Positions 423 to 56,500 of a stretch of 64,000 bases of DNA are shown one piece after another; the stretch's first letter is position 1; every line of letters begins with the position of its first letter. The notes under the pieces are model-generated. The model worked only from the letters and a program-made list of their open reading frames with translations, was not told the origin of the DNA and searched no databases. The stretch covers positions 3,100,001-3,164,000 of the forward strand of contig JBLDXI010000042.1 of the NCBI GenBank assembly GCA_047495785.1, written 5' to 3'. A program made the translations under genes and the position numbers. Origin of the DNA: Lepidodermella squamata. Its lineage: Eukaryota; Animalia; Gastrotricha.

Positions 423-918
423 CGCTTCTTGATGATGTTTATTCATTGAGCCTTTACAGTCTATGTTGCAGATAGCGGCAGTCTGGGGTAGTAGCTACAC
501 GAAATGCGACTTATTTCAGCTGCGCAAATATGAAAGTAGTGTTCATGCGAATAGAGAGTTGTGTCGGCCGTGCTTGGCGTACTGGTCCCGGTGCTTCGCT
601 TTCGACTTCTACGACACAAAATCAGGGGGCTTGTTTTGAGTAAAGCACCTTTAGGTTCAACGGAGATCAATTAGAGAATCAATTTTGAATTAATTTCCAA
701 CATGCTTGAAACTAACGGATATCCTTTGCGGTGAAGTTCTCATCTTAATTTTCTACGCCAAGCGTGTCTGCTGTTCTCTCCCAGGAAGTGAAATGGCGCG
801 ATGTGAAAACGGAGAAGAATAAGAGGAAAGTGGGCGGAGGGATTGCGCAATATAAATGCGAATAATGAAGCTCAAAGATCGACATTGTTCATATTGCGAG
901 GCAAATAGGGTCTTCGAA

Positions 919-3300
919 ATGATCTTGATGCCTTTGACCGCCCTGTTAAGCTGGATAGGGCAGAAGCCAGTAACGGCCGAGATCAACATGACTTCAATCA
1001 TGAGTCCTATCGAAAAGCCTTACACCATCAAACTGCTGAACATGCTACCCACTTGGCTTACTTCGAGCGTCAAAACGGTTGAATTGCTCACTCTTATCGT
1101 AAATTCCAGGCGAGATGTCTTGCCAAACTATCGACTGGAGGTTCAAATCGAGGATGACGATGTTGGCAGGCTGTCATCCCAGCGGGTGATTTCATTCGCC
1201 CGTCAATTTAATGGCATGACGAATCGATCAATCGTTCAATCGCCAATAGTTGTTGGACCCTTTTATTCAACTGGGTGTAAGCAAATCGGGAAATTCATGC
1301 ATTACATCAATCAAGTCGACATAGCCACCAGCTGTACATCCCCAGTTCTCAACGATCGTCAGCTGTACCGCAATCTATACCTGACCCAAACAACTGACAA
1401 GTACACAGCTCAGCCAATACTCAACTTCATCAGAGAGATTGGTAAATGGAATAAAATCGCGATAATCTCTCACACAGGGTCTGCAAACGACTACTCAAAT
1501 GCTATATTCATCCACCAGAAAGCTGTGGAGGCTAATTTCACAGTAAAATGGTTTGACCTGGTTGACGGGGCTGTTATGACTGACGAGGCGATAATATCCC
1601 TGAAAGAATCGGATGCTCGCATAATAATTGCTTACATGTCAGACCTGAATATGCTCTATTCTTTCATATGCAAGACTCTGCAGTTTGGTTTAACCGGCCC
1701 GAAGTACGTCTTTATTCTGAACCTTGAATCTTACATAGATGATTATAGCGGAAGGCCGACATTTTGCTCGGATGAAGATTTTGAGAAACAAATGCCGAGT
1801 AGCTACTGGTTCGGACTTTCAATCTCATCGGCTGACAATAAACTCAAAACCCAGCTGGGCTATAGTTCTTTCGAGTTTGATGAGGCCATCTCGAAGTTAA
1901 CAAATGGATCTGTTAGGGAGGCCCATCCTGCAACACACGACAGCTTGCTGCTGGCAGTCATGGCTTTGGACAACACCGAGAAAGAGTTAGCGAAGCTTAA
2001 TATGTCATTGCTGAATTATCCGCAGCATCCTGATGTCGTAATGCGAGCTGCAAATCAATCTGTTTTAAATTCGAGATTGGTCGGTGTTCGAATTGGCTTG
2101 ATGACTTACTCCAAGGGTGGCCTTCCAGATCGGGACAATAAAGTAATCTCATATTACTCCAAGGATCAAAAGAGGCCGGTGGATTTTGCCAATTTAAAGC
2201 AAAAGCCAAATTCCCCAGATTTTTATTACGATAGCTACTTCATTGAATTCATGCAAGGATACCAAAATCTCACATCTCTTCAACTCCCAAAATTCGACTC
2301 GAGGCCTATTATAAAATCGCGGGATAAAATCTCAATTGAAGTGTTCGCAGTCATCCTTATTTTGAGCGGCGCAGGTACTGCAGCTCTATTTTATCCTATG
2401 CGGTTGTCCTATCACTTGAATTTCACTCTAAAATGGCAACTACTTTTGACGATGTCTGGGTGTCTTTTGCTGAATGTTGCAGCAAGCCTGTACGCGATTC
2501 CTTACAATTGGTCTGATTCATTGGCAATATGGAATGCTTCTCTAGTTATTACAGTGATTGGAGCTTCCTTGATTAACGGAACATTTGCCTTTCAACACAT
2601 TATCTTGGAACACGCTTTCAAAACTCTTAGCGCCCAACGAGCTTCTTCAGCGTTGATGTGGACAAAATCTGATCACGTTTCGTTACGGGTCTCTGCAAAT
2701 CATACCTCGACTTCTTCCTTCAATAAAACATCACTAAGGCCGAGTTCGGTGGCTGAAGTCGAGGAAATTAATGATGATTTTAATAAAAAGGTCGATCGGA
2801 GCATCGCTGTATCATCCATCAGTTTTGCTGGTTTGAATGCGGTCATTCTTGTGGTATGGTTGATAGGACTTGGTGGGGTGACGTGTTCGTTAACACTGAA
2901 CTCTAAAATAGACGATGGCCAAGCGGATGTTTTCATAGAGCAATGGCTATTCGATTGCTCTTCTCGCAGTGGCTCAGTTTCAGCTTGGCTATTGTCCGTT
3001 GCGTTTCTGAGCTTGGCTGTCCTTCTTCTTGGTGCATTTTCTGCTTATCATATTTCAAAGCGATTGAAATTACGACGTTTCGGCAGGAAGTATCAGACAC
3101 AAATATATCGCTGGGGCCTGGCTAATGCAGTATTCTTGCTTTTAGGTGGGTTGCTGATCGTTTTTATTCTCAATGGGCAGAACTCTAAGCAGAAAATAGC
3201 TTTGGCGGTTGACAGCATTTTATTATCTCTGATTACATCAGTAGTGCTTACGTTGGCGTTGCGAGCTAATAGAGGGACAGCTGAGCAGAGCCGGCAATGA
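919..3300 (+). CDS. Class C GPCR, GABA-B-like (Venus flytrap plus 7TM, no Cys-rich domain), intronless
   Basis: ORF 856..3300 with a likely signal-peptide start at 919. It has ANF-receptor-type motifs (VNSRRDVLPNYRLEV, IVVGPFYS, WNKIAII, LKESDARIII, GLTGPKYVFIL) and seven hydrophobic segments. Confidence 0.85.
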   Translation: MILMPLTALLSWIGQKPVTAEINMTSIMSPIEKPYTIKLLNMLPTWLTSSVKTVELLTLIVNSRRDVLPNYRLEVQIEDDDVGRLSSQRVISFARQFNGMTNRSIVQSPIVVGPFYSTGCKQIGKFMHYINQVDIATSCTSPVLNDRQLYRNLYLTQTTDKYTAQPILNFIREIGKWNKIAIISHTGSANDYSNAIFIHQKAVEANFTVKWFDLVDGAVMTDEAIISLKESDARIIIAYMSDLNMLYSFICKTLQFGLTGPKYVFILNLESYIDDYSGRPTFCSDEDFEKQMPSSYWFGLSISSADNKLKTQLGYSSFEFDEAISKLTNGSVREAHPATHDSLLLAVMALDNTEKELAKLNMSLLNYPQHPDVVMRAANQSVLNSRLVGVRIGLMTYSKGGLPDRDNKVISYYSKDQKRPVDFANLKQKPNSPDFYYDSYFIEFMQGYQNLTSLQLPKFDSRPIIKSRDKISIEVFAVILILSGAGTAALFYPMRLSYHLNFTLKWQLLLTMSGCLLLNVAASLYAIPYNWSDSLAIWNASLVITVIGASLINGTFAFQHIILEHAFKTLSAQRASSALMWTKSDHVSLRVSANHTSTSSFNKTSLRPSSVAEVEEINDDFNKKVDRSIAVSSISFAGLNAVILVVWLIGLGGVTCSLTLNSKIDDGQADVFIEQWLFDCSSRSGSVSAWLLSVAFLSLAVLLLGAFSAYHISKRLKLRRFGRKYQTQIYRWGLANAVFLLLGGLLIVFILNGQNSKQKIALAVDSILLSLITSVVLTLALRANRGTAEQSRQ

Positions 3301-4442: not shown

Positions 4443-6773
4443 ATGTTTTCGATTTCAGCTTTCATCTTGTATTTAGCAGTATGGCTAGAATCGAGCTACC
4501 AACTTAACATCACTGAATTGAAACCTATTAATAAGAAATTTACTATCAAATTGCTTAATATGATGCCACAAACCACTGCACTATCCCTGCAATATGCCAA
4601 AGGTTGCGAGTTTCTCGCCATGATTGTCAATTCCAGACGAGATATTCTACCGGACTATAGGCTGGAAGTTCAGATAGAGGAGGAGGATGTTGGCAGATTA
4701 GCAGCACGTAAGGTTATTGCTTTCAACCGGCAATTCGAAGGCACTGACATACCTCAAAATCTTGTTAAATCACCTATTGTTGTCGGGCCATTCTACTCGA
4801 CCGGTTGCCGTCAAATTGGAAGATTCATGCACTACATCGATCAAGTGGCCATTGCGACAGCTTGCACCTCATCTGTCCTTAGTGAGCACCACCTTTACCG
4901 CAACTTGTACCTCACCCAAACAACGGACAAATTCACAGCTCAACCTATACTAAATTTCATCAGGGAGTGGGGAAGGTGGAACAAAATCGCAATAATCTCA
5001 CAAACTAGTTCAGTCAATGACAATTCGAATGCTCTGTTCATCCATCAAAAGGCAGTTGAGGCAAACTTCACAGTTGTTTGGTTTGACCTCGAGAGTGAAG
5101 CTTTAATGACTGGTGAGATTATGAGTTCGCTCAAGCGATCGGACGCTCGCGTTATCATTGCGTACATTTCCGATCGAAATATGACCACTTCGTTTCTTTG
5201 CAAAGCCCTAGAACTTGGTATTACCGGACCTAAGTACGTGTTCATCCTCAATCTCGAGTCTTACGGACCGGCGAGTACGAGGCCAAAATTCTGCTCAGAT
5301 GAAGATTTTGAAAAGCAAATGCCGGGCACTTTCTGGTTTGGTCTATCAAAAAAACCGGTTGATCAGAATTTGAGGTCAGAGTTGGGTTATACCGCAGCAG
5401 AATATAGCAAAGCCTTAAACCAGTTCACAAATGGATCTGCGACAGAAGTTCATTCCTCAACTCATGACAGCTTGCTACTTGCAATCCTGGCTCTGAACAA
5501 CACAGAAACTGAGCTTAACAAGCTAAACCTTTCTCTTAAAGACTATCCTCGATTCCCGGAGTTGGTTATGAAGATTGCAAATCAGTCCGTGTTGAATGCA
5601 AGAGTGATTGGTCTAAGGATAGGACTGATGACCTATTCTAAAGGGGGCCTGCCCGACCGAGATAACAAAGTCATCTCATACTACTCGCAACAAATGGGAG
5701 AGCCTGTAGACTTTGCCCGGCTCAAACAGATACCAAACTCAGTTGATTTCGAATACAGCAGTTATTTCTTCGAGCCGATCCCTCCATTCAAAAATCAATC
5801 AATTTTCGATTTTCCGAAATTTGACTCAAGACCGACCGTTAAAATTATCGACACCGTCTCTTTGCCGTTATTCGTTGCTATCGTTGTTCTGTCCGGTGTT
5901 ATCGCATTATTTATGGCTTGCTTGTTAATAAGGGCTGCGATGAAGCCAGATGGACTTCCGCTTGTAGACACATTGACCCTTACCGGAGGCATAATCGTCA
6001 ACGTTGCTTCTTGCTTATTTACTCTACCTGGCGACTGGGGAGATTCGAGAACAGCATGGATAGCATCAGTAGTAACCTTCGTTATAGGAACATCGCTAAT
6101 AAATGGATCTCTGGCCTGTCAATTTCTGCAAATTAAACGCAATTTGGGAAAAATCATCCCGATCAGAATAGCCTCTTCTATGACTCAAGCATATTTTACC
6201 ATGCGATCGCGCCCTACTAGGTCGAATAGATATCGCTCGAGATTTTCTCCTATCATGGATGAAAATGATACCGATGATATCTCACTGAAAGGTGCAGATA
6301 AAGCAGCAGCTTCATTTTCGGTTTATTTTTTCATTGCCAACGCCGTATTTTTAGCAGTATGGCTTGCTGGTCTTGATGGAGTTAGCTGCAATTCTCGTCT
6401 TGTTGAAACGGAAGATAATTCGGAAGATGATTTATTCCTCGAAACCTGGCAGTTCATGTGTGACTCTGAAATCGGGTCAATAACGATATGGACCTTGTCT
6501 CTAGCTGCGATTCATGTCATCGTTCTGCTGCTGGGCGCAATGGCGGCTTATCAAATTTCTAAAAGAACCGACTTCCGACGTTATTGCACGACTTACAAAT
6601 TGCATTTGAGAAGATGGGGACTTGCTAATTCAGCTCTCTTGCTACTCGGAGGCATGTTGGTCATGTTTGTTCTCAACGCAAGCACTTCCTCGCAGCGAAT
6701 CGCGATGGCAACATTAGGGCTGCTCCTAACCTCTATAACCGCTGTTGTGATTGCTGCAGCCATCAAGGCGTAA
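4443..6773 (+). CDS. Class C GPCR, GABA-B-like; tandem paralog of 919..3300, intronless
   Basis: 776-aa ORF with signal peptide, VFT domain and 7TM. Long stretches are identical to the first receptor (e.g. IGLMTYSKGGLPDRDNKVISYYS). Confidence 0.87.
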   Translation: MFSISAFILYLAVWLESSYQLNITELKPINKKFTIKLLNMMPQTTALSLQYAKGCEFLAMIVNSRRDILPDYRLEVQIEEEDVGRLAARKVIAFNRQFEGTDIPQNLVKSPIVVGPFYSTGCRQIGRFMHYIDQVAIATACTSSVLSEHHLYRNLYLTQTTDKFTAQPILNFIREWGRWNKIAIISQTSSVNDNSNALFIHQKAVEANFTVVWFDLESEALMTGEIMSSLKRSDARVIIAYISDRNMTTSFLCKALELGITGPKYVFILNLESYGPASTRPKFCSDEDFEKQMPGTFWFGLSKKPVDQNLRSELGYTAAEYSKALNQFTNGSATEVHSSTHDSLLLAILALNNTETELNKLNLSLKDYPRFPELVMKIANQSVLNARVIGLRIGLMTYSKGGLPDRDNKVISYYSQQMGEPVDFARLKQIPNSVDFEYSSYFFEPIPPFKNQSIFDFPKFDSRPTVKIIDTVSLPLFVAIVVLSGVIALFMACLLIRAAMKPDGLPLVDTLTLTGGIIVNVASCLFTLPGDWGDSRTAWIASVVTFVIGTSLINGSLACQFLQIKRNLGKIIPIRIASSMTQAYFTMRSRPTRSNRYRSRFSPIMDENDTDDISLKGADKAAASFSVYFFIANAVFLAVWLAGLDGVSCNSRLVETEDNSEDDLFLETWQFMCDSEIGSITIWTLSLAAIHVIVLLLGAMAAYQISKRTDFRRYCTTYKLHLRRWGLANSALLLLGGMLVMFVLNASTSSQRIAMATLGLLLTSITAVVIAAAIKA

Positions 6774-6985
6774 AATGTAAAACTCGCATTATTTATGACG
6801 ACGCCGTATCCGAGTCCAAGGTGAAAATTGTAAAAATAGAACCACCTTGAAGGTGACTCATTTTAGCAGTAAAATGATGGCTTCCTGCACAAAAGGGGAA
6901 GGCAATAATTATGGATCTTGAAATATGTTAAAAAACCGAGTTCGACTAAATCTCGGCTTCAATATACCTATTTCTGTGTATTAAT

Positions 6986-7209
6986 ATCCCAGTCTCAAAA
7001 CAATGTGGACCCTGAGTTGATCTAAATTTGATACAGGGGTAGATTTTATAGGTTCAACCCTACGTAGATCGCATGGATTCCTATAGATCCTGTATATATT
7101 GGATCAACAATACAGGTCTCATAAGGATCGCAATTTTGGATGAATATTTTGCCTTGTGGATGTACTCACGATCTATTGAGCTCTGGGTCTAGTGATTTCT
7201 GTCTGGGAT
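6986..7209. mobile_element. Degenerate MITE-like element
   Basis: Imperfect ~35-bp inverted ends: atcccagtctcaaaacaatgtggaccctgag versus the reverse complement atcccagacagaaatcactagacccagag. Confidence 0.4.
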
Positions 7210-8584
7210 GGAGGTCTTACAAGTCGACTTTATTGTTGCTGTTGTAAGGTTTATTGAGGAACCATTAGAAATGGGAGCAAAAATGGTAACTGCATCAGAT
7301 TTTGGACAGTTTATAAATAAAATTGACAGAAATAACTTCGATTTAGTGTCATCTCAGCTATTACATCGCATTCGGCCCGGGTACTGACTGGGGCCTTGGC
7401 ACGCTTGTTGGATGAAAAACTAACTTGACAATGCGCAACAAGGGATGTGTTCGCTCTGCGACTTATCGGTTCGTTAATGTTCGTTAATGATTCCGTCAAG
7501 GCTGAGCAACCGCATCCAATTCCAGCTATTCAGCGAATGATTTATCTCTGAGAACTTTTCCTTTCATAAGTTCCACTCATCTTCATTTTTACTTTTACGC
7601 AGTGGTTAAGCTACTTCACTTCCATATAAGACCTCATGGACGCGTCTCAAAACGATTTACCGTATAAGAGCAAGATTCCTACGAACTTGCATGGTACTTC
7701 TTAAACTCATTCTGATTCCAATCAACGGCATGTGTATATCAATTAGACACAAAATTAAGGGATAGGGCGTCTCCTATTTACGTTGTCTATTGTCTTAGGA
7801 GTCGTAAGAACACAGGACTTGAACCATTTGTAAATTGATCTATATTTTTGGTCTTCGTTTCAAGTTCATGGTGATTGAAAACAGGTCATGTTTTGTCATG
7901 CATTGCGACATTGTTTTTTATGGGCTAAGCGTACGTGTTGCGCGGACTTCGGCATCACGGATGTACGCAACCGAACGACAGGCATCTATCTCCGTTAATT
8001 TGTTAGTATACACAGCAATCGTCATAGGGGTATCGGAACAATCAATTAACTTAACATGAACAGCAGTGAGTTCACAGCGGACAAAAATTGCATTAGAAAT
8101 TAATCGCCGTAATTAGCAGTGGATATCCGCTGAGTTGCATTGCCCTACTTTTTTGCTGTCGTCGCTATGTCTCTGAATCCAATTAGCCATAATATTGTGT
8201 TGTTGTTGGAATGAATTCCTAATAATAAGTGCCCTTTTAAAGTTTTATCAGAAGTGACCAAGCTCATTTAAAATGCTGCGATGAAACTATTGAGGATAAT
8301 GGTCATCAGCCTGCCAAAAAGAGGTCACAAAAGAGGTCGTATGGGGGATGAAATCTGCATGCCCAATATTATTTCAGAAGTGATCCAGGAACTGCTTCCA
8401 AAAATGAGAATTTCTGGTCAAACTGGATGACGTAAGAACTGACGTAATCTTACACTTGAGTTTAACCGCCCAAAGAAGAATTATTTGAAACTTTATTGGA
8501 AAAAAATCACATGTCTCAAGTCTATAACATAATACCTAATCACTGAGATTCAATTATAAATGTTAGTTGAAATTCTAAAAGTGT

Positions 8585-16658: not shown

Positions 16659-18190
16659 TAGGCTGCGGCTTTGAGCTTAACAAAACTTTGAGATTGTGTC
16701 TGGGTGAAACAGCGCCAACTTCCGCAGCTTATCCCAACTTAAATAGAAGTAGGAAAGTGACCGAAATCAGGTGTCCGCAATGTGTCAAACTTGACTAAAT
16801 TTAGTAGCGCGTCATGACCAAATTAATTCCTAGCTGGTATAAGTGACGTCGATCGACATTAAGTCGGGTAAAATTATACCTAGTATCGCTTGACCTAATT
16901 TGCCATCAACCAGAACGAGACATTTGCCTTAAGCAATATTGACCAGCCGTGAAACAAGACGTGGGCGGTATCGCTTGGCTTGATCACTAAATGAATGTCG
17001 ATCCCTTGATCGTATGGGAAACTCGGCTAATGTTCAACTTCGTTTTCGCTTAGGACAGACAGCTGGCTTACGATTTGAGCAAAATAACAATCATGTACTA
17101 AAGCCATTTAAACATTCGACATTTAAGACACATTATTGAGTTGATCAGCATTATCGATGAAAAGAGTGACCGTCAGAAAATCTCTGGTCCAAATATATGG
17201 CCTCATGATGACGATTAATGAACTAAATTTACTAAAAATGAACAGTCAAATTAGTTGTGCAATTGGATTCATGATAATTTCTTTGTCATGCTTAGACGAT
17301 ATTTTTTATAAATGTACGTTAGTGGATAAGTCGGGCGTATTTCAATGTTAGGGATTAAAATCTCGGTCAAACGCACATCAGCAGCAATGTTTCATTCCTT
17401 GATTAAACAGAAATGAGGCTAAATTGGATCGGCTACCCGGTGACGGTGCCAAACCTAAAACTTGAAATCATAGACATGTTCGGAGCGGCCTCAGAATAAG
17501 ACAGTACGTCGGTGATCCGGTGAACAGAAAAATACATTCTTTTCATTTGATGAATGAACAACTTTGAAGCAGCTTCACTGTCAACAGCTCCAGAATATGA
17601 GATAAGCGCATGAATCAATTGGTGAAATTTGCATAAATACAGGAGTGGATCCAGGTGTTTATTCAATTTGGCAGTAGGATAGTAAATTTTATGAATGGAA
17701 ATAGCTGCTGTTTACGGCCTGGTATCATACGCCAGACAACGGCAAATTTAAAACCACCTTGTATTCCAAAACCATTTGTATATGATTAACTCACACTGAA
17801 ACTCAGACTATAAGTCGCACTTCAGTTGCCGCCTCATTGTTAACTACGGTTAGCTATGGTAGGCCTATGCTTTTATGGTCTATGGTTTCCTATAAGAAGA
17901 AGCAAGTAAACATACGAGCCTTACTTCTTTTGAGTTTGTTCAATTTATATATTATGCAAGTCGGCCACGCGTTTAGCGGTCCCATAGACGATGAAAAACA
18001 ACAACACGAATGCGTCAAAAGCTTGGTTAGTTCTTATACCGAGGCCTTTTGCTCGTAGCAATTGCATCAAATGCACGGAACCCTGTAGTTTTTCTCTCCT
18101 TGTTAAGGCCTAGTTTCACTTTTCTGAACTTATACACTCCGGACATTTGCAACAAGCAGATTGTTACAGAATTTCTCGATCGTGATTGAG

Positions 18191-19056
18191 ATGGATCATA
18201 ATCATGACCACAGCATGCACGGCATGCAAATGCCGATGCAAATGGCGTCAACAACAATGAAATCGCTCGCCCAATCTTTATTTACAACGACCTTCCAACC
18301 GAGTTCTCCGTCCACCAAAATCTCCACGGTTGCTGCTACAACAACAACTGCTGCAACGTTTGCTGCTACCCAAACAACTACGGCCGAAAAAGTCATGGAA
18401 GCCATGCATATGCATGACCATCATGATCATGATCATGGCGATAGTCTTCCATTAAGTGATAGCAAAAGCGAACACAGCATGTCTATGCCGATGGTTTTCT
18501 TTGAAAGCAGCAATAACTTCAAAGTCCTGTTCGAGGCTTGGGTGGTCGACCACCAGTGGCGTAAGTCCCTAAAATGCAAATTCGCTTTCCTAGTTTTCTC
18601 ATTTTTTAACTGATAGAATTCGCCCTTACTATAATCGGCTGCTTTTTCATGGGGTTCGTCTTTGAAGCTCTACGAATCCTGCGCCAGGTCCATTTCCAGA
18701 AACAAGGGCGAAACATGTTGCCATGGAAGAGGACAAACAGCAAACAGGCTATCAACCAGCAAAGTTGCTGTGAAAGCAACAGTAACAGTGAAGATGCTGC
18801 CCCCAGCAATATTAAAGCTACGTCACTGAACCAAGGAATTGAAGTGAACACAGGTTTTTTCAGCGCTTTCCACGTTGTCCAGACGATTCTTCACCTACTC
18901 ATGGCTTGCCTTGGCTACCTGTTGATGCTAGCCGTTATGTCTTTTAACATTTGGGTTTTCGTGGCGATTGTAGGCGGTCTAACCGTAGGCTACCTCGCTC
19001 TAGGCCATTTTGTCAAACCAGGAAAATTCACTGGAATTTGCGATGACTGCTGTTAG
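18191..19056 (+). CDS. SLC31A1: Ctr/SLC31 high-affinity copper transporter
   Basis: Exons 18191-18560 and 18617-19056. His/Met-rich ectodomain, MxMxMxF, VLFEAW, TM2 MLAVM (MxxxM), TM3 GLTVG (GxxxG) and C-terminal DDCC. Confidence 0.93.
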
Positions 19057-19187: not shown

Positions 19188-20408
19188 TTAGAAGATGAAA
19201 CGGTTCAAAGCTGGTATTCCGGCCAAAGAGATGAACAACAAGGTAGATGAATAGGCGATCCTTGGGCCACAGTAGGATTTTACTGTTTTCGCCGTAGTAC
19301 CAGCAGCGGTAGTTGGGGCGGCAGTCATCGCAGCTGTTGTAGTTGTTACTTCTGTCACCGCAACAGGTGCAGCTCGAGGTACCATCGCTGTCGATGAATC
19401 ATTCGATAGAGCCACAGTGTCATTCGCAGTTACTTGATGATCGATCGTACCATTTAAAGCCCCACCGGTGTCATTTGCTTGGTGCATAGTTGTATCCATC
19501 ATAGCAGCCGTAGTCATTATCATCATTTCTGTGGTTGGAGGTGGTTGAGTTGTAACCATCATGGTCGTAGACTCTGTTGTAGTCTCGTGGTGTAAAGCAG
19601 AAATTGCCATCATAGCTACTCCAGCAACTTCATGATCGCAAAAATGGCCAGCGTCGTTGCATAGTTCGGAGCAGCAGAAGCAAATCTAAATAACTGAAAC
19701 TCGGAAAAAGTTGAAGATGAAGAGTCAAGTTTATACCACAATTCTCTGGCCATCTTTAGAGTAGGAATCCGAACCATTTACGCCGTGTTCACATGTTTGG
19801 GAAATGCTGCTGTCGTTTCTCGGCGGCATGCAACCATGCCGTTTCCAGTTCGTTGGTAAGGAATCATTTCCCGACATCGACTCGATCGTCATATGGCTGA
19901 GAGATGACTCATCCAAAGAAACGGTTTTCTGTGAAAAAGTCCAATGATTTACTTGTGAATTATAAGATGGCTAAGGATTAAGGATTCGATTTCTACCTTA
20001 TAATCCTTTCTTTATTGGAGAAACTCAAAATTAAGCTGGAGAGCAAAAACTTGGAAGCTTTCCTTAAATCAGACGATTCAAGGCAAAATTCTGAGACTCA
20101 TTCTGGTGATACCGTTGAACTCCTTAGCCTCATTTGAAATGCACGTTTCATCTAGCTGGCACACATGAATCCTAGATTCCGCAGGCGAATAACGAAACGA
20201 ACCCGGGTTCTTACTTACTGTGCAAAATTCGCAGCCATGGACGATGGAAACATTGCCGGATTGTTCGTCCGAGTGGTAACACGTAAAGTTCGCTGGAATG
20301 GTAAATTCTCAAGGAATGGTTTTATGGACAAACCGTGGTGGTTATACCTTGGACGGGGCAGGTTTGTAACAGGATAACAGTGAGGCTAAATACTGCAAGA
20401 ACAATCAT
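19188..20408 (-). CDS. Ly6/three-finger (Quiver-like) protein with Met/His/Thr-rich stalk and GPI-like tail
   Basis: Exons 20408-20348, 20292-20219, 19928-19737 and 19685-19188. Signal peptide, FTCY, CEFC, CFCCSELCN and a hydrophobic C-terminus. Confidence 0.78.
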
Positions 20409-22179: not shown

Positions 22180-23545
22180 ATTTTATCGGATTCTACTTGC
22201 ACTATAGGAAAAACCAATCATCCTGATTAAAAGGTCCAATTGACGGGCACTTCTAACTTGATCGGAGCGTGTATTATGTTCCTATTCCGCGGATTTTCGA
22301 ACATTATCTAAATTGATGGTTAAGATTCCGCTAAAAACTCACTAATCACAACTTTGATAATTGGATAATTATTCTAATACAAGAGTATTGCGTTTTAATG
22401 CATTATCCTGTCTTTGAAAATTCCTCTGAAACATGTTCAACTCGTTAATAGTTCTGAGAACCGCGAAACAAGTTTTTCCATCAAGAATCAGCGTGAAAAG
22501 TAGTTGTGGTTAGCAAACTGCGCGCGATTATCTAAGGAATTGAACGAGGGGTGAGAAGTGTTGATATTTTATCAAATTAAGATTAAACTTTAATAACCAA
22601 GAGCAGCACTTTTCTGCATGTGCGCGCTCACGTGTGAATGCGTAGTAGAGTATGCGCCTGCCCCTTGTAGGATTGTCAGAATCAGGCAGCAGGGGGTCGT
22701 GCGTAGCTAAATTTATCAGCCCTCTTGGTATCAACTTCGCGCCAAAACACACCCGTGCTCGCTTTTTTCAAGTAAATTTATCAAATTTTATCGCGCTGAT
22801 TCCGAATAAAATTAGACTCTAATAAACATTTACTAAATGTTTCTAAAAAAATGTGGTGTGGATTGTCATGTGGCTTCTCTGGTTGAACTAGATGGAGCGG
22901 AAATTCTAAAAGAGAAAGGATAAAATCCGGTATATTGAGCAATTTTATCGGATTGCTTGCTCCAGTAAAAACCAATCATCCTGATTAGAGCACTTCTAAC
23001 TTGATCGGAGAATGTATTGTGTTCCTTTTCGCGGATTTTCGAACATTATCTGAATTGAGGTCCGCTAAGAACTCAGTGATCACAATTTGATAATTTGAAA
23101 TTATTCCAATATATAGGTAGGAGTGATTGCCGCTATGCGTTCTAATGCACTGTCCTGTCTTTGAACTAGAAAAAATTGCATGTTAAATGGGGCGGTACTC
23201 CTTACTAGTTTTGAGAACTGCGAAACTATTTCTCCATCATTAATCAGCGTGAGAAGTAGCCATAGCTAGCAGCATAGACTGCACGCGATTCTCTAAGGAG
23301 TTGAACGAGGGGTTTGAAGAGTTGATATTCTATCGAATTAAGATTAAAATTTATCAGCTATTTTGAAATCTTCGCGCCAAAACACGCCCGCGCTTGTCTT
23401 CAAGTAACAAAAACGTGGGTAAATATAGCAAATCATATAGCGCTGATTCCAGATATTTCTAAAATTAGACTTGTTGTGTAAGATTCTAAACAACTTGTGT
23501 GGATTGTCAAGAGGCTTCTTTGGTTGAACTAGAGAGAGCCGGCAA
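22180..23545. repeat. Diverged tandem duplication, two copies of a ~0.65-0.75 kb non-coding unit
   Basis: Shared blocks aaaaaccaatcatcctgatta, gcacttctaacttgatcggag, gcggattttcgaacattatc, ttcgcgccaaaacac and gtggattgtca..ggttgaactaga recur at about 22.2-22.9 kb and 22.94-23.54 kb. Confidence 0.85.
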
Positions 23546-23910
23546 GTCTATAGGAGGAACAAAATCCCATTTATTGACTATTGACCTATATGATTGTCTT
23601 CGAAAGTGTATGGGAAATGAGTGGGAAAGTACTTTCAACTCTAATTGAGTTAACCTTTCCATTCTGATTGCTCTTAGAGGGAAGTTTTCTATCCCTGCAC
23701 ATTTCAAAAATTAAAATGTATACCGATGTGACGCATGTGATTTTTATCGGGGTTTCCATTTGTTAAATGAAGAAAACATGTTTCCACGCAAACATGAGCG
23801 GATTTGTCCCAATGCTCTCAATAGAAAGGAAAACACGAATCAGAATTTTATTGATACATCAGACAGTAATGCATCATCGGTCTTGAGAGCAAAAAATCAG
23901 CAGTCATCAA

Positions 23911-24926
23911 TCAGCCATTCATAAGAAGCAGTCCTACTAAATTCGCTATTACGAGAAGAAATGATATCGCGTAGTCGTTCGAGTGTATCGAATTAGACTT
24001 GGAAAACGTCGAACATGTTAATTTTGAATTGCAGCCATCCGAGCAGCACGTGCAGTAGTAGACGTAAAGGCCATTCAAAATCCGCCCACCGCTGTTCCAA
24101 TAGCCCTCGAAACCGCCGTCGGTACAAGTGTAGCGTTGAGTGCCTAAATAGCCCCAACTGTTCCACGTCGCCCAGCCGCCTAATAACGAAGCTGTTATGT
24201 TAGGGTTATTCACTAAGGCTAGGGTGTTTGGTGTGGTTGTCGCGTTATAACCGCCCGCGGTTAACCACGCCGTCCAGATTGACCAGACGCTCGACCAAGA
24301 GTCGGTCCAAGAGCCGCGCCAAGCTCCGTTCATCACGTCCAAATTGCTCCACGCCCATGAAGTACTGCCCCAGTAGGACCAGGACTGCTCGCTCCAAGTG
24401 GGTGACCAAGCGATGGGTTGAAGCTGGGCGCTCCAAGCTAGGGCCCATGCGACGCTCCACGATGGGTTTGTCTCGGCGGGTGTCCACGGGGTGGTTTTTG
24501 CTGCCGAGTTCCAGGTGCTGATTTGACCGGTGTACCACCATGACCAGGACGGGGTGTAGGAGCCAAAGTCGGAAAAGCCTTGGCAGTCCCAAAAATATGT
24601 CGCAATGCCACCCTGAATCGGCTCGACTTTTCCTCTCTGAATAAAGATGAATCATTTTGGAATTTAAAAATGTGGAATTTAATAAATTTACTATACAGCC
24701 AGCAGCATTTGCGCAGGTTACTAATGTTGCTGATGTCGGTATTTCGGAAGTTGCGCTAATTGCTTGATAGCAATAATTTGCTGTTATCGGATGAAAAAAA
24801 TTACCGTAATACTTTATTTGCAAAATTAATTATCTCACCTTGAATGACTGAAGGTTTGAAAATGAACAGAATCAGCATGAAGTAATGCTGTAAACAGCTG
24901 GGAATTCTACATTTTATCGACAACAT
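23911..24926 (-). CDS. Ly6/three-finger GPI-type protein with a 152-aa Trp-rich insert
   Basis: Exons 24926-24839, 24780-24692 and 24636-23911. Motifs NYCY, C..GC, WDC, CTDGGFEGY and CTCCSDGCN..C, followed by a hydrophobic tail. Confidence 0.8.
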
Positions 24927-25440
24927 ATTCCCTAATTTCTGAGGAGAAATTAAATGATTAATGTCCCATAAGTAACGCAAATCAAGGAAAGGGATCAAAA
25001 GCTCTAAAATGAGATAGGAATTGTAAGAAAGATCTTAGAGAAATCTAAAATGCCCTCGGTATAGTAATTAAGAATGTCTCCTGCGAATGGGATTAAAAAC
25101 ATCCGAAGAAATTTGATCCAACCAGGTAAAAACCGAAAAATTACCGAACCAGATACCATCGGGGTATTCGAGGTTTCCTCCGGTACATTAATAATTTCTT
25201 CTGTAAAATCGGGCATAAAGAATGGAAGATTCCCCCGAATTGAAATAATTAAATAATTTCCTAAAAAATCAATATATTAATTTTCCAAAAATTTGACAAA
25301 AAATTAATTGCGATTTTTCATACATTTTCTGATAAATGCAGGTAAGTTTATGTATGTCATAGACTTCCGGGTGCTTACTCGCAGAAATCACGGTCATATT
25401 TATCATGAGGATTTTTAAATATCCGGCATGGCTTCAATAA

Positions 25441-25496
25441 GTATGGCTAAAGTATGTAAAGCTAAAGTAAAGCTAAAGTAAAGCTAAAGTATGGCT
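25441..25496. repeat. Short tandem repeat of an 11-bp unit (gctaaagtaaa)
   Basis: About four imperfect copies are directly visible. Confidence 0.7.
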
Positions 25497-26321
25497 TCAT
25501 CTTGGCTAATTTTAAAATAAATATATCACGTGACTCCATTTCACAGGCTTTTGCAGCAGCTAAAAGGTGCGATAAACAATAGCTCAAGGCGACGTCCGGT
25601 TTCCGTCACAATTCATAAAAATTAATCGCTTTCAACTATGCAAGTGTCTACAAACTAGTTGAATAAAATCTATATATTGCCTGGCTGTATTTTTGAGCTT
25701 ATAATTCAATCTTTTCCTTTCATTCCGGCTATGAATAGCCACTTTTGATTGTAATAACTGGCTTGCTATTTTTCATCTCATGTAAAAAGATGCAGCAAGC
25801 AGATCAATGCCGGTGCGACTCGTTGCTAAGGGCGTGCGTAAAATACAAGAAATTGTTCATAAATCCTTACCTGGAACGTCGCTCAGCAACCCGAATGACT
25901 TTTTATGAAAAAAATCGGAAATCGGAAATGTTATCGATAACGATAAAAAGAAAAAAATGCGCAATTTTTCGATATTTTTTTATTCTCGTATTTTCTCTCC
26001 TCTTTGATTAATATATAAATTTCAATAAAAGCGAAAAAAATTGTTATTGAAAATCTTTGTTACAAGATAACGTGGCTTTATAGAATGGAATAAACTAGTA
26101 TCGCACAAGAAGATTGCAGTGAGTTTTTTCCGACAAAAAATTAAGCAAGACACGTAAAAACGGCTTTTGATCATAGTTCTCGAGAGGAATCAAGACGTTG
26201 ACATGACTTGATATGATAATAAAAATAAGCTAGGGCTCAAAATGACAGAAATGCGTGTAATTCATTTTTTTGAGATTTTTTATAACCTATTTACAGCGCG
26301 GATAATGCAATGCGATTTGTG

Positions 26322-27114
26322 TTATGCGTTGAGAACAGAGACAAGAGCGAAAGCGAGCAGCAAGCCGAACGAGGATGACAAGGTAGCAGCGCCGTTGAAA
26401 GTTTTGCATCGCGAATCGCGGTTGCAGTAGTCGGAACAGCACACGCACATGTACGCGTTGGCTGATAGCGAATTCGAATAGCCTTCGAAGCTGCCCTCGA
26501 CGCATAAATTAGCCGCTGTGTTGTAGAACGGCCCGGCGGGTGGCGCTATGGCGGCGCCCCAGGCAGCCCATGGGTAGCTTGTCCAGGTATTTTGGCCAGC
26601 CCATTGGCTGAAGGTGCCGGCTGCCCAGGCTGGGGCGCCCCAGTTCTGCCAGTTGGACCACGTCGACCAGGGATTGCCGCTCCACGATGCGACAACTGGA
26701 GCGCCGCCCCAGCCGCCCCACGCACTGGGCGCCGCACCCCAGGAACCCCACGCGCCCGGGTAGACACCCTGCGCAACCATTCCAGTGCTACCGGTCATGC
26801 AGCCCCAAATCCAAATTGTCCCACTTTGGCCGTTTGTGTACGCATATTTTCCTCTCTAAAAAATATGTCATAAAAAATTATATTTAATTAATTTGAATAA
26901 ATTACCACACAAGCTGTGCAATTCGGTGCCATTTGGTACTGGCCAGCCTGGGGGAAGTTTGCATCTGAAGCCGATCCGACGTAGCATATGTAGGCTGAAA
27001 AAAATATTGAATATTTCTATCGAAATTTTATCGAAAATTCTTACCTTGAGCTGTTGTGAAGAAGATTAAGCTTATAGCAGAAAAAGTCAAGGTTATCCGT
27101 GTTTTAGCGGTCAT
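26322..27114 (-). CDS. Ly6/three-finger GPI-type protein with a 98-aa Trp/Gly/Ala-rich insert
   Basis: Exons 27114-27045, 26994-26906 and 26855-26322, with the same intron phases as the 24-kb paralog. Motifs ICY, CTAC, WGC, CVEGSFEGY and CVCCSDYCN..C. Confidence 0.82.
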
Positions 27115-32488: not shown

Positions 32489-35400
32489 TTAGTCGAGTAA
32501 AATGTAATTTTCATCAGCGATCGATCGTTGCTTTCTGGAAAAGCCGGTAGTCACTTTTTGAATCCAATCCATAAAATGCCAGACGCGCTAAAAGAAGGGT
32601 AAAATGGAATAATTCAAACTGCTCATTCAATTCGGCTATGGTGAGAAGTTAAAAGGAGGCTTGGCGCCATGAAAATAGATATGAAAATAGAAAAATCTTA
32701 CCGTGTAAACACCAGGTGCATTTTTGCCGCCGCATAATTTGCCAAACGAAACAATGCCGTGAAGTTCCCACCGGCCGTTGACGTAGCAGTGCAACGGCCC
32801 GCCCGAGTCACCCTGGCACGCGTCTATGCCGCCCTGCTGGTAGCCAGCACAAAACATGCTCGGCAATACGAGGACCTGGTAATTAGTGTTCATGCCTCTG
32901 CACACGTTGTTGTCGATAATCGGCACTACAGCTTCTTTAAAGATCACGTTCTCGTAGCTTGAATTTTCGGTGTCACCCCAGCCAACAACAATACACCTGT
33001 CGGAAAGGCGGACATCTCGACTAGGCAGGCAGATGGATTCTCCCAAATGAGTTGCTTGGATCTGCAAAATCGATAAAGAATTGATGACAAATCAATACAC
33101 CTTTTTGACTTTGCAATTTCATTATTTTTATTAAAGAAAAACGCGTTTATTTTTTCATGATTATCAGCGTATTCATTTTATTCATTTTCTTACTTTTTTC
33201 TACCCAAGGATTTACTCGATCTTCGAAGGTTCGCTGTATGCGACTACGAAACCCGAATGGGATGAATTATATATCAAATTGAAGCTAGATATATAATCTT
33301 TTCAAATAGTATGCGATCAGATCGACAAAATCATTATTTCTTTCGCAGAAACTAAGGAATACGTAGAATGAACTGCAAAGATGTTTTCCTTGGGTAGTTT
33401 TTATATTTTATAGGTATAAGGCCCCTCCCTCCTCCCCAAAAATGATTAGAACAATCAGGCGAAGGTGATATCTCGAGTAGAAGCGATAGAACCTCAAAAA
33501 ATTTGGCTTTAGTAGCATTTTGGGCAATAGCTTACGCGGGTGCTGAGGTAGTTTTCACAAATATTGCTTTGGTTTCATCATGAAATGATGAAATTAGCGA
33601 AGACTAAGTAATAGAATAGTTCCTTAGTAGTTATTTGTTGAAAAATAAACATCATTGTAGGTAAAATCAGAAGAAACTTTCCGATCAACCAGTCGGCTAA
33701 AACGTTGAATACCTTCAAGAACAAAATGGCATCCAGTATTCTAATTTCACAGCTAGATAGATCAGATCTCTAGCTTCAATTTGATATATAATTCATCCCA
33801 TTCGGGTTTCGTATTCGCATACAGCGAACCTTCGAAGATCGAGTAAATCCTTAGGTAGAAAAAAGTAAGAAAATGAATAAAATGAATACGCTGATAATGA
33901 TGAAAAAATAAACGCGTGTTTCTTTAATAAAAAGAATGAAATTGCAAAGTAAAAAAGGTGTATAGAGTAAAAGTCATTTTAAACATTTCAAAATTACCCC
34001 TTCCTCGAGTAAAATGAGTGCGATGTCGTTTTGTTTGCGATTCGGTGGTTTCCCGTAATTCTTATGTATCATGATATGCTTGATTTTCGGTTTCAGCAGC
34101 GGTGATTTGCCGTCGAAAGCGATATTTTCCAACTTTTCATGGCGACCAATGACCGCCTCCCAGCCATGTTTCTGCTTTAAAAGATATTCCTTGACGAAGC
34201 AATGAGCGGCAGTAACGATCCACCCTAATACAAATAAACTCGAGTTTCACGTGGCGAAAAATGTTGTGATTTGATACTTCTGTTGAGAATCGAAGCCCCA
34301 CACAAGTGCTCGCCACGAAATGCCAGGGAGACGGCCCATTTCCAAGCCCCTCTGCCGGCTTCATTGCCTCCAACGATTCGCTGCAAAGGCCCAGAGCGGA
34401 ACCCCATCGCTGGTGGTAGAGCATTCGATCGGCCGCAATTCTGCGACAGCGCGAAGGTCGGACGGCTGATTCTAGAGCCATCATTCGTTTCATTGCGACT
34501 CGCAATGACAGTAAACCCCATGGAGAAACGGTGTTTCATCCCATTCGGGTAGAAATATATATCAAGAGGCCGAAATGTTGTAGCTTTATCTTCATCATCA
34601 AACGGCGGAACTTCGTCACCGCAAGAGTAATGAGTTTTGACGATTTCGCCAGTCTTGGGGGATACTAACTCGATGGTAAGAATAGGCTTCGAGCAGTCGG
34701 TATGACGCGGATCGACGGCAAAGTCGTAGAAGCGGATGCCGATAGCTTGCTGGTACGAACCGGCTGGCAGGCGAGGGTCTAGGCGCCAGTGGCATCTGAC
34801 GACGCCAGGTGCGATATTCTCGGGGCTGCTGATTATGCCGCTGCGAGCGTGGTAGGCTACTCCAGCGCCAGCGCAAGGATTCGGCACCCATTTCGCAGCT
34901 AATTGCTGGCGATTTTCAACGAATATTTGCAACTCTGCAGGCTTTGCTGTCGCCTTCATAACAAAAACATGCATAATTTGGAATATTTTCGAAGGTTAAA
35001 AATTAGCTTGAAAATCGTGATATTTGAAGCAAAGGTCGGCAAGGTGGTTCCTGGTTTTTCGAAATTTTTTGAGAATTTTACTAATTTTACCTGATTTTTG
35101 GCAATTTAAAACATGTTATTCACTTAATGCGTAATTAGTGGGTCATTTCGAACTCATTTGCATATGCATCCATTATGTGCGTATACTCATTTGCATATGC
35201 AACGGCCTTTCCTCTTGAAATGCTGGTCTAATTTTGAAATTTGAACTTCTAAGTGAGAGAGATGATGAACAACATTTCTAGTTTAAAAGTACCTTCGGCT
35301 TTCCAGGCCAGTCACCTTTATGTTCTGGGTCTTCATGTTCGCCCGTGTCATACGTAATTGTCCCATCACTCCTTTCCTCATCCTCATCTTGATTTTCATT

Positions 35401-53557: not shown

Positions 53558-56500
53558 TCAAACCAACGTGTACGAAACAAGCTCCATATTCAGCGCATCC
53601 CCAGTTATTGCCTCGACGAGGCCTGAAATGGTTTCATCAGCTTTCGATTGCGCGACGATGACGCGATCGTCTGGGGTGACTACGATAGCCGACGGGCGAC
53701 TGGGCGAAGATGGTGACAGCGTGATCATGTAGGTTTCCGAAAGCGCAGTGAAAACGGCGACAGAGCTTGTCGAGCGATCGGTGACAAACAAATTGCCTTC
53801 TTTGTCGGCGAACAGCCCAGCGCACGCGAATGGTGCCGGGGCAGACGAAGAGACCGAAATTGATCCAGAACGGCTACGGTTGACCGTCTCTTCGTCATTT
53901 GCAGACGAGACTGAAGACGAGGTTTGCTTCGATGCGGGCTGTTAAAAAAAGCATAGAAGGTTATTGACTGATCTTAAAAAGGTTCCTCTCAAACCAAACG
54001 CAAAAGCTGGGTTTTTTGTTGGGGCATAGCCAATTCTCCGCATAGCAAAAATTCTCGAAATGAAAACTTGATGCCTGTGTCCCTGCAAAAAGGTTGATTC
54101 CTTGTTTCTAAGCTTCAACCTTTGAAACAGGGGTCGCAACCGTTACCCAAGTATCCTAAAATTTGAATGCTTGTTCCCTTCCCAATAAGGTTTGTTCAAT
54201 CATTAGCTTTTGTGTTAAAACTCGCGTTTCTTCAGTATTAGAAAATTGTGACAAGCCAAGCAAGCAGGATAGAGTGATGTAAGGAAACGGCGATGAATTC
54301 TCGAAGATCTCATCTGTTTGTGATTAAAAATAGGAAAAGAAAACAGCAAAACAAGCCTCGGGTAGGTCAAGGGTCAGCGCGCTCATTACCAATGACTGAT
54401 GGCTGCTGGTGACCGTCGACGGTCCGAAAACAGCGGGAGAAACAGCAGCTGCCACTGAGGCGACCTTGATAACACCGAGGAGACGCAACGTGCAATCGGC
54501 GTAACGCCACGCCCTGATATCATCACCGAACAGCCCGACGCTGTAGATTGTGTTACCGCAGGTCGCGAGAAAACGAGGCACGGAACCTTTCCGCTGAAAG
54601 TGGACGATGTTCAGCAGATCACCGTGGTTTGTGTGGATGGTCATCCGAGTCTTGCCTGGGTCGGCAATAACATAAACACCGCCAGATGTCGCAGTGATCG
54701 CCCATGGTTTATCGAGCAACCCAGCGCCGAAAACATGGTTCAGCCGACCCTGCTGGTCGTAGACGTGAACAGCATGGGTAGCTGCATCTGTGATAGCGAT
54801 TTGGTTGTCGTAGACACACATCGCAGTTGGCTGAGCGAGTTTGTTAGAGCGCTGCGGGAAGAAGCACTTCAGCATGCCAGTCATATCGAAAATCTGAACT
54901 CGACGTTCGGAATTAGCGCTCAAAACGACTAGTTCTCCGGTTGAAAGTAGGGCCAAAGCGTCGACTGTTCTCAACTGACGACGGACATCATCCTTCATAA
55001 TGAAGGTCTGGGCGCCGCCTTGTGTCTGAATCAGAGAATCGCCTTCAGCTGCTGGTTTGTACTCAATAATCGGATCAGCATTAGCAGCACCTTCAGCTGG
55101 CATTATGGTGCGAACTAACCGGCCTAGTCTAACTTCGCTTTCGCCAGATAGGAACTGAACAGTGAGTTGGGTTCGATCTGCGAAACTCTCGACGCTGTAA
55201 GGTTCGAATTGAAGAGCTTCGTCCAGATCGTTCAAAACTTCGCCCTTCGCCTTTAGCTGCTCGATAGGCTCGAGATCCTTTCCTAGAACTGCTTTACCAG
55301 CTTCGACCGCACTTTGCAGCGTGACAATAGTTGAATCCATGCGTTTTCGCTCGCTCTCAATCGTAGCGAAGTCGAAGAGTTGGTCAAGCTCGTCAAGAAG
55401 CGTGTCCTTCTGCTTGTTAATCTGCGCAATCAAATTTTCGGCGATAGCGCATAATTCGGATTTAACAAGGTCCTTCTTATCGTTAACGTCCTTCTCAATC
55501 TGTCCGAGCTTTGTTCGTTTTTCGTTCAAGTCAGTCAGTTCGTTCTGAGCCTTGTCGATGTAGTTCTGGCACTCGGCCAGGAATTCTTGGCGAACCTCCT
55601 GTATCGCTTCAATTTCGTGACCAGCGTGATCTGTGACGGTACAAACGAGGCAAATCGGCCCTCGGCACTGGGTGCAAAAGAAGCAGACCGGTTCGCCGCC
55701 ATGCGTGTCACAACAGTGTTGCCGCGCCTTATCGCATAACTCATCATCGGTAAGAGTTAGCAAAGAATGCTTCGCCGTAACTTTGTTTTCGCGATGCCCA
55801 CTGCCACAGTCCTTACAAAGGTTGGTTTTGCACTCAAGGCAGAAGACCTTAGCCGGGGTAGGCTGGCCTTTGAAGTTGCAAATATGGCAGTCGGTGTCAT
55901 CTGTTCGCCGGCTTAGAACATCGCGAAGTCGTTCGACGAAAAACGAGTCTGGGAAACCCTCGGCGCCCTCCTTTGGCATGTAAACCTGGCGACGGCAAAT
56001 CGGGCAGCTGAACTTGCGAAAGTCGAGACGGTAGCTTTCCATGTACTTGTTCAAACACTCGAGGCAAAATGTGTGCAGGCACGGCAGGCTCTTCGGATTT
56101 TTGAAGACGTCGAAGCAGATTTTGCAGAGGAGAAATTCCTCACGAAGACACTCCCGCAAATCTTTACTCATCGAAGCAGCGGCGCCGTTTTCGCTCATTG
56201 AAGGCAGCGGGACATCTCCAGAGTGTTCAACTTCTTCCGTTCGCGAGGAAGTTCTATGCCGGAATCTGCTGCGAGTTCGAGTCGAAGAGTAATCATCTGA
56301 GGCGCTGTCTTCAGCGGTTTTTGTCGACTCCTCTTTTTCTTTTTCCGGGCTTTTCGACCGAGGCGAAGGTGGTGCAGCTGTAGTTGAAGTCGCGCCTCCT
56401 GAGTAGTAGGAGGTTCGATGTGATGGTACATAGCTAGACGAGTAGTTAGAGGTTGTTGAACTAGGGGTGTAGTAACTAGAGGATCCAGTGCCACTTCCGT

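Follow-up and report, generated by a model that had tools for sequence, protein, structure and literature searches.

Long tryptophan-rich inserts in predicted Ly6/uPAR-like proteins encoded by a tandem gene pair of the gastrotrich Lepidodermella squamata

The Ly6/uPAR (LU) domain spans 60-90 residues and has up to ten Cys (PMC6600238). Two adjacent genes of Lepidodermella squamata, here called A and B, raise the question of how such a domain could carry, between two of its Cys, a long stretch rich in Trp, whether that stretch is a genuine part of the protein, and what it might do at the cell surface. The genes lie on the minus strand of a 64,000 nt stretch of contig JBLDXI010000042.1 (the window, in which all gene positions are given), which is eukaryotic in character, having a GC content of 42% and introns of 50-58 nt with GT..AG ends. 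Each has three coding exons. They are tandem paralogs, transcribed and under purifying selection, and the Trp-rich insert is a real, expressed and selected feature that makes their products an unusual form of LU-type protein.

Genes A and B are built alike: exon 1 encodes a hydrophobic signal peptide, exon 2 around 30 residues with three Cys, and exon 3 the rest of the protein in a single open frame. The predicted product of gene B, which starts at an ATG at 27114 and has a 3' untranslated region extending to about 25986, is 230 aa long; that of gene A, with an ATG at 24926 and an alternative one at 24878, is 300 aa long. The inserts lie between scaffold Cys 4 and 5, and in them Trp is set among residues that are small or polar (G, A, S, T, P and N). 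The counts given in the original prediction proved exact when the minus-strand translations were examined: in A there are 152 aa, 23 of them Trp, between the scaffold Cys in ..FWDC and ..YTC, and in B 98 aa, with 14 Trp and not a single D, E, K or R, between those in ..IWGC and ..NLC. Neither insert contains a Cys, and Arg is found twice in A and never in B. Trp is present in excess of the TGG frequency expected from the base composition of each insert (P = 1e-15 for A and 4e-8 for B). No tandem DNA repeat was found under either insert, hence they are not products of recent slippage, and an origin by recent microsatellite expansion was rejected on the same ground.

Transcription of these sequences was assessed from the contigs of a run, X1, recorded merely as 'RNA?' and treated as cDNA-like from the behaviour of its contigs; a second run, X2, is genomic. 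The X1 contigs skip 26856-26905, 26995-27044 and 24781-24838, segments whose CT..AC ends on the plus strand are GT..AG on the gene strand, and the resulting joints (26855>26906, 26994>27045 and 24780>24839) correspond to three of the four introns predicted in A and B. The fourth, intron 2 of gene A (24637-24691, GT..AG), was placed from the sequence, cDNA joints being listed for the other three only. There is no X1 cover over the intergenic DNA at 25276-25945, at 23400-23801 or beyond 27286, and one X1 contig ends in what we take to be a SMART-type cDNA amplification primer. The original prediction had named transcripts lacking the Trp-rich segment as the observation that would contradict it; none was seen, since the X1 contigs run colinear through 26531-26855, where they are joined to exon 2, and through 24068-24555. 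They also cover 25986-26437, and they are unbroken across the whole of the covered Trp-rich part of B and most of that of A. On the other side, this evidence on splicing is at the level of contigs, and a minor isoform without the insert may exist. Three further X1 joints inside gene A, at 24327-24555 and 24692-24842, connect opposite strands, and are probably assembly artefacts in low-complexity sequence.

The pattern of substitution shows the insert to be under constraint as protein and kept by selection. Comparison of runs X1 and X2 with the window lists 22 single-base differences in exon 3 of A and B; 21 of them alter a third position of the Trp frame and are synonymous (P = 1.4e-9), and within the inserts the figure is 15 of 16 (10/11 in A and 5/5 in B). 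The possibility of a wrong reading frame was rejected on this basis and because insert and Cys scaffold share one frame. Over a longer distance, both genes have orthologs on the contigs of one environmental taxon (L001 and L002/L003), in the same tandem order and with the same exon plan, at a divergence that has saturated synonymous sites (pS 0.72-0.91). Across the 139 codons of the A insert that could be aligned, identity is 48%; of its 23 Trp, 20 are kept, against 40% identity at the other residues (Fisher P = 5e-5). The A insert is composite: its start is conserved and its core is rich in Trp; a stretch of 25 aa, free of aromatics and with two N-glycosylation sequons present in both species, is poorly conserved; and a block of ten residues ahead of the closing Cys is perfectly conserved in the ortholog.

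The B insert has evolved in a different manner. Its first 17 residues are identical in the ortholog and its flanks are kept, whilst the centre has become (PPVYN)n in the environmental taxon, with four to five repeats and Tyr in place of Trp. The copies of the B ortholog, at 3725-4261 of L001, 4784-5278 of L002 and 1035-1529 of L003, come from contigs of different metagenomes that are identical except for indels in the PPVYN repeat, hence its length polymorphism is confined to the insert. The original view of the insert as selected for composition is too simple: in A the Trp positions themselves are conserved, and in B the centre turns over, with Tyr taking the place of Trp in the ortholog. Beyond the A-B pair synteny is not kept between the taxa, because a Trypsin/Sushi gene stands directly after the A ortholog (L001 6839-8962) and the only trypsin-like open reading frame (ORF) in the window, at 34225-34974, lies around 7 kb away on the other side of the pair.

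The spacing of aromatic residues was compared with that in composition-matched shuffles of each insert. WxxW occurs six times in B, where 1.8 would be expected (P = 0.003), three times in the B ortholog (0.44 expected; P = 0.005), six times in A (3.3 expected; P = 0.08) and six times in the A ortholog (P = 0.03), sometimes in overlapping runs such as the W-S-T-W-S-N-W-Q-N-W of B. The spacing had been described beforehand as mostly WxxW or WxxxW; the first of these is indeed enriched, whereas WxxxW is raised weakly and in A alone. Pairs of the form WW and WxW are depleted, and the residue following Trp is G, S, A or T in most cases. Gaps between aromatics are more even than in the shuffles in both B (coefficient of variation 0.56, against 0.83; P = 0.027) and its ortholog (0.44, against 0.83; P = 0.003), with close aromatic pairs depleted (P = 0.009 and 0.004 respectively). 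In all four inserts, W, Y and F together make up 16-20% of residues and charge is low.

The scaffold that surrounds the inserts is found also in a third paralog, gene C. It has the same layout of ten Cys as A and B and, as had been claimed, just 12 aa at the position of the insert, and shares with them an FEGY motif, the sequence C-x-CC-x3-CN and the intron phases (1, then 0), although it has one intron more than the three-exon plan of A, B and the L001 orthologs. The ten Cys are colinear in the five proteins compared (A, B, C and the two orthologs). Leaving out the insert, the scaffold of A and B is 82-86 aa long with 10 Cys, and the domain becomes 180-238 aa when the insert is included. The first Cys falls at residue 4-5 past the signal-peptide exon, which is 70, 88, 61, 85 and 79 nt long across the five genes, each length being 1 modulo 3 (phase 1); near the C terminus, the C-x-CC-x3-CN motif is followed by one more Cys 5-6 residues on. 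In gene C a Thr/Met-rich stalk of around 115 aa comes after the CN motif, ahead of a glycosylphosphatidylinositol (GPI)-type tail. In a pattern-level test, such tails have C-terminal hydrophobic 11-mers with mean Kyte-Doolittle values of 2.2-3.0, preceded by S, G, A and N, and the A and B proteins are probably GPI-anchored at the cell surface.

Do these features identify an LU domain? Genes of this family are divided into three exons, one for the signal peptide and a pair, bounded by phase-1 introns, for the domain; they have a GPI signal in exon 3 and tend to occur in small clusters (PMC6600238), and the plan of three exons with the GPI signal in the last is found exactly in A, B and the L001 orthologs. 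The domain typically has 8-10 Cys in a stereotyped order, one of them near residue 3 of the mature protein, with an adjacent CC and a final C-N. In common with CD59, Lynx1 and Quiver/Sleepless, moreover, A and B have a phase-1 intron, a scaffold of the size given above with ten Cys, a CC followed by C-N, a GPI-type tail within about 25 residues and a place in a small tandem cluster. Neighbours with family names in the language-model comparison (ESM Atlas) all belong to the Ly6 clan (QVR, UPAR_LY6, Toxin_TOLIP, Activin_recp and DUF753). Several observations count against the assignment. The loop-I disulfide pair (plesiotypic Cys2-Cys3), present in CD59, Lynx1 and Quiver/Sleepless, is absent, an extra Cys pair (in C-x-CC and 5-6 residues past CN) is present, and CC-x3-CN is one residue shorter than CC-x4-CN. 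No match to the LU-clan profiles of Pfam (UPAR_LY6, QVR, Toxin_TOLIP, Ly-6_related and Activin_recp) was found at E <= 10 with exon 3 and seven exon pieces, nor any meaningful match to another Pfam family, and a sequence search of the PDB gave two chance-level matches with the single protein (E = 0.74 and 2.8) and none with the profile. AlphaFold2 models of exon 3 alone, made for B and for A from an alignment of four sequences, had unusable predicted local distance difference test scores (29.5 and 31.7), and the language-model neighbour scores, at 0.78-0.86, amount to a lead only. The Ly6/uPAR identity originally proposed is supported by gene structure, the first Cys, the CC..CN motif, scaffold size, tail and clustering, but not by profile, PDB or structure-prediction support, and we consider it likely, though some way from assured, that the A and B proteins are LU-like.

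It had also been proposed that the two Cys halves flanking the insert form one three-finger domain from which the insert extends as a surface-displayed loop. That the halves belong to one domain is supported by their being contiguous in paralog C and by the colinearity of the ten Cys; the three-finger fold itself is a prediction. The position of the loop has to be revised: the insert maps to the head linker that joins finger II to finger III, near the membrane, and not to a finger tip. On the layout of the scaffold it is predicted to replace the short linker between plesiotypic Cys6 and Cys7 of the LU consensus. This linker has 5 residues in CD59, as against the 98-152 of A and B. We take those residues of CD59 that touch lipid to lie in the Cys6-Cys7 linker. 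In simulations of GPI-anchored CD59, head-linker residues contact lipids (PMC9819746).

Relatives of these proteins are few. A word search of 5.8 billion proteins with A and B, and an exhaustive HMMER search of 1.84 billion representatives with a profile of four sequences, each returned only the same two orthologs on the environmental contigs L001-L003, and scans of JGI metagenome contigs revealed no relative. The A insert alone had no usable neighbour in the ESM Atlas, and neither the window nor L002 matched Rfam. A literature search for Trp-rich low-complexity surface proteins, or for Trp-rich Ly6 proteins, found no precedent; in a recent survey of invertebrate LU proteins, domains are given as around 60-90 residues, and a term search of its text turned up neither inserts nor tryptophan.

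The best explanation, which we hold with a confidence just short of an even chance, is of an aromatic sticker-and-spacer segment placed close to the membrane on an LU scaffold, with several of its Trp probably C-mannosylated. The insert would be a flexible, collapsed low-complexity region emerging from the membrane-facing part of the domain, held at the cell surface by the scaffold and the GPI anchor. Through Trp (or Tyr) side chains set at regular intervals it would interact weakly at many points, whether with further copies of itself on the same or a facing cell, with the matrix, with glycans or with the bilayer interface. C-mannosylation of several Trp by a DPY19-type enzyme in the endoplasmic reticulum (ER), which would keep an aromatic chain soluble, is probable because the chain would pass through the ER unfolded and is rich in WxxW with a small +1 residue. 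The DPY19 of C. elegans modifies chains that have not folded, for which it requires a WxxW/C sequon, preferably with a small residue at +1 (PMC10154233), and the substrate features are seen here in the signal peptide, the WxxW counts of 6, 6, 6 and 3 in the four inserts, and the mostly G, S, A or T residues at +1. The A insert would be constrained in its positions, whilst the centre of B would be free to turn over provided that aromatic content and spacing were kept. Three facts sit awkwardly with this explanation: the A and A ortholog inserts are without even aromatic spacing; the frozen Trp positions of A would fit a folded domain or specific motifs at least equally well; and only about 40% of Trp start a WxxW, with the B ortholog managing without most of these motifs.

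The last of these facts bears also on the alternative that the insert is in essence a run of C-mannosylation sequons, displaying on an LU stalk a dense C-mannosyl-Trp coat or lectin ligand: a hydrated, protease-resistant layer that would be the Trp-based counterpart of a mucin domain. The enrichment of WxxW in all four inserts, the depletion of WW and WxW, and the signal peptide all accord with this, as do the small +1 residues at five of the six WxxW of B, of the kind favoured by DPY19 (PMC10154233), and the presence in paralog C of a Thr-rich, mucin-like stalk instead, which suggests that glycosylated low-complexity segments may be a theme of the family. Yet the majority of Trp do not occupy position 0 of a WxxW, and the B ortholog has exchanged its central Trp for Tyr, which cannot be C-mannosylated, without loss of aromatic content. 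This exchange of Trp for evenly spaced Tyr implies that aromatic valence and spacing are selected in B, and not mannosylation alone; we regard the alternative as unlikely.

A folded domain, proposed mainly for gene A, is likewise improbable to our minds. A new Trp-rich module within the LU head, perhaps shaped as a beta-rich Trp ladder or offering a surface for carbohydrate, would recognise one particular ligand, for instance a polysaccharide, and would account for the preservation of 20 of 23 Trp, and of stretches like the ten-residue block ahead of the closing Cys, in the face of saturated synonymous sites; the synonymous nature of all but one of the strain differences listed in the A insert and its lack of sticker-like aromatic spacing point the same way. 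Such a domain would, however, have almost no aliphatic hydrophobic or charged residues from which to build a core and would have to accommodate several indels between orthologs, and the insert has no neighbour in Pfam, the PDB or the ESM Atlas, nor any structure from AlphaFold2, for which the alignment held only four sequences. Rather doubtful, too, is a reading in which these genes would define a kind of extracellular module not described before: a Trp-based sticker segment, C-mannosylated many times over, that would loop out from a Ly6-type head close to the membrane and form, on the cell surface, a two-dimensional condensate, an adhesive, or a protective or UV-absorbing coat.

Still less probable is that the segment acts chiefly at the membrane interface, an uncharged Trp-rich chain partitioning into its own or an apposed bilayer and so pinning the LU domain flat, sorting it into ordered lipid patches or bridging two membranes. 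The predicted exit of the insert from the head some 10-15 residues from the likely GPI attachment site, and the lipid contacts of the CD59 head linker described above, are consistent with such a role. Summed on the Wimley-White scale, the interfacial free energy comes to -17 kcal/mol in B and -26 kcal/mol in A. For the B ortholog the sum is only -1 kcal/mol, hence interfacial partitioning is not conserved, and C-mannosylation or O-glycosylation would lessen it. Finally, a neutral or artefactual origin, by expansion of junk low-complexity sequence, use of the wrong frame or mis-joining of exons, is largely refuted and deserves very little credence: the GC-rich stretch is open in all six frames, database relatives are limited to one environmental taxon and the centre of B is polymorphic in copy number there, but the insert shares both exon and frame with the Cys scaffold and is covered by cDNA-like contigs, strain differences are almost all synonymous in the Trp frame, Trp positions are kept across saturated divergence, and DNA tandem repeats are lacking.

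Several known systems resemble parts of this arrangement. GPIHBP1 and SP-10 (ACRV1) come closest to a precedent, being proteins in which, as here, an LU domain is accompanied by a low-complexity or disordered segment of variable length; theirs is a functionally important, highly acidic N-terminal extension encoded by its own exon (PMC6600238). The segment of A and B, by contrast, is uncharged and aromatic, and lies inside the domain, in the same exon as the predicted fingers II and III. With thrombospondin type-1 repeats and cytokine receptors, which are substrates of DPY19, they share a secretory route, overlapping WxxW motifs and small +1 residues. They are without the Cys or Arg framework of the thrombospondin repeat, in which WxxWxxW is layered with Arg and there are three disulfides, and have far more sequons per chain; a repeat of this type was rejected, there being no match to Pfam TSP_1, no Cys in the inserts and no Arg in that of B, with two in that of A.

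Prion-like domains such as those of FUS and hnRNPA1 also combine uncharged polar or small spacers with aromatics, at the proportion found here and with the even spacing seen in B and its ortholog, and Martin et al. reportedly found, in Science in 2020, that even spacing of aromatics favours liquid over solid phases. In domains of this kind Trp is rarely the sticker (PMC12677899). They are intracellular, rich in Gln and Asn and dependent on Tyr and Phe, unlike the segment of A and B, which is predicted to be extracellular, tethered to the membrane and set between two scaffold Cys. The GW/WG Ago-hook regions of GW182/TNRC6 are low-complexity sequences with Trp amid G, S, A, T and N, which bind Argonaute in the cytosol. 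The inserts strikingly resemble them in the pattern of their Trp, but membership was rejected, because the signal peptide and GPI-type tail place the segment outside the cell. Proline-rich proteins of the plant cell wall have cross-linkable PPVYK repeats, a pentapeptide nearly matched by the PPVYN of the B ortholog; the differences are that the latter is from an animal gene and has only 4-5 repeats.

The coordinates of the features of the three paralogs are given in Table 1. The predicted stalk of gene C is rich in Thr, Met and His, with MM and MxM runs, and the gene lies tail-to-tail with a Ctr copper-transporter gene (18161-19056, plus strand; Pfam Ctr, 1.7e-20) that also has a Met/His-rich N terminus; a link between gene C and copper handling is possible. 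Between A and B, a high-copy repeat at 25008-25275 reaches a contig depth of 6,000-7,600 in X2, against around 70 in its surroundings, with many loose ends; it is also covered in X1, and is probably a short transposable element. Elsewhere in the window, ANF_receptor ligand-binding domains occur in a pair of long ORFs that have no introns (856-3300, 814 aa, and 4443-6773, 776 aa; plus strand), and there is a RING/B-box gene of TRIM-NHL type (54324-56717, minus strand). Close relatives of the latter were found only on ENA and Logan contigs that carry no annotation (71% and 33% identity), named animal proteins being around 30% identical, as for a lineage without an annotated proteome in the database.

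Table 1. Positions in the window of genes A, B and C, their exons and the Trp-rich inserts
Feature	Positions	Strand	Content and basis
Gene C (third paralog)	19188..20408	-	Exons 20348-20408, 20219-20292, 19737-19928 and 19188-19685; placed by GT..AG sites and reading frame
Gene A exon 1	24839..24926	-	Signal peptide; followed by phase-1 intron 24781-24838
Gene A exon 2	24692..24780	-	Predicted finger I, scaffold Cys 1-3; exon boundary also in L001 ortholog
Gene A exon 3	23911..24636	-	Predicted finger II, insert, predicted finger III, C-x-CC-x3-CN, GPI-type tail, stop
Gene A insert	24127..24582	-	152 aa, 23 Trp, 8 charged residues
Gene B exon 1	27045..27114	-	70 nt; ATG and signal peptide; followed by phase-1 intron; from translation
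Gene B exon 2	26906..26994	-	Predicted finger I, scaffold Cys 1-3; spliced frame intact; X1 joints on both sides
Gene B exon 3	26322..26855	-	Predicted finger II, insert, predicted finger III, C-x-CC-x3-CN, GPI-type tail, stop
Gene B insert	26505..26798	-	98 aa, 14 Trp, six WxxW, aromatics evenly spaced

LU domains have been regarded as compact units of 60-90 residues that vary in their fingers, whilst in the proteins described here the head appears to tolerate a selected insert of 100-150 residues. Very few protein segments of any kind combine a Trp content of around 15% with a near absence of charge, and to our knowledge, and in the literature searched, no extracellular low-complexity regions built on Trp have been described. 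Were the inserts multiply C-mannosylated, they would be the densest natural substrate of this modification and a handy tool for its study; were they to self-associate, the sticker-and-spacer idea would be extended to the outer face of the membrane. With the A insert frozen and the centre of B remodelled to PPVYN with variation in copy number, the pair provides a natural experiment on how selection acts on aromatic low-complexity sequence.

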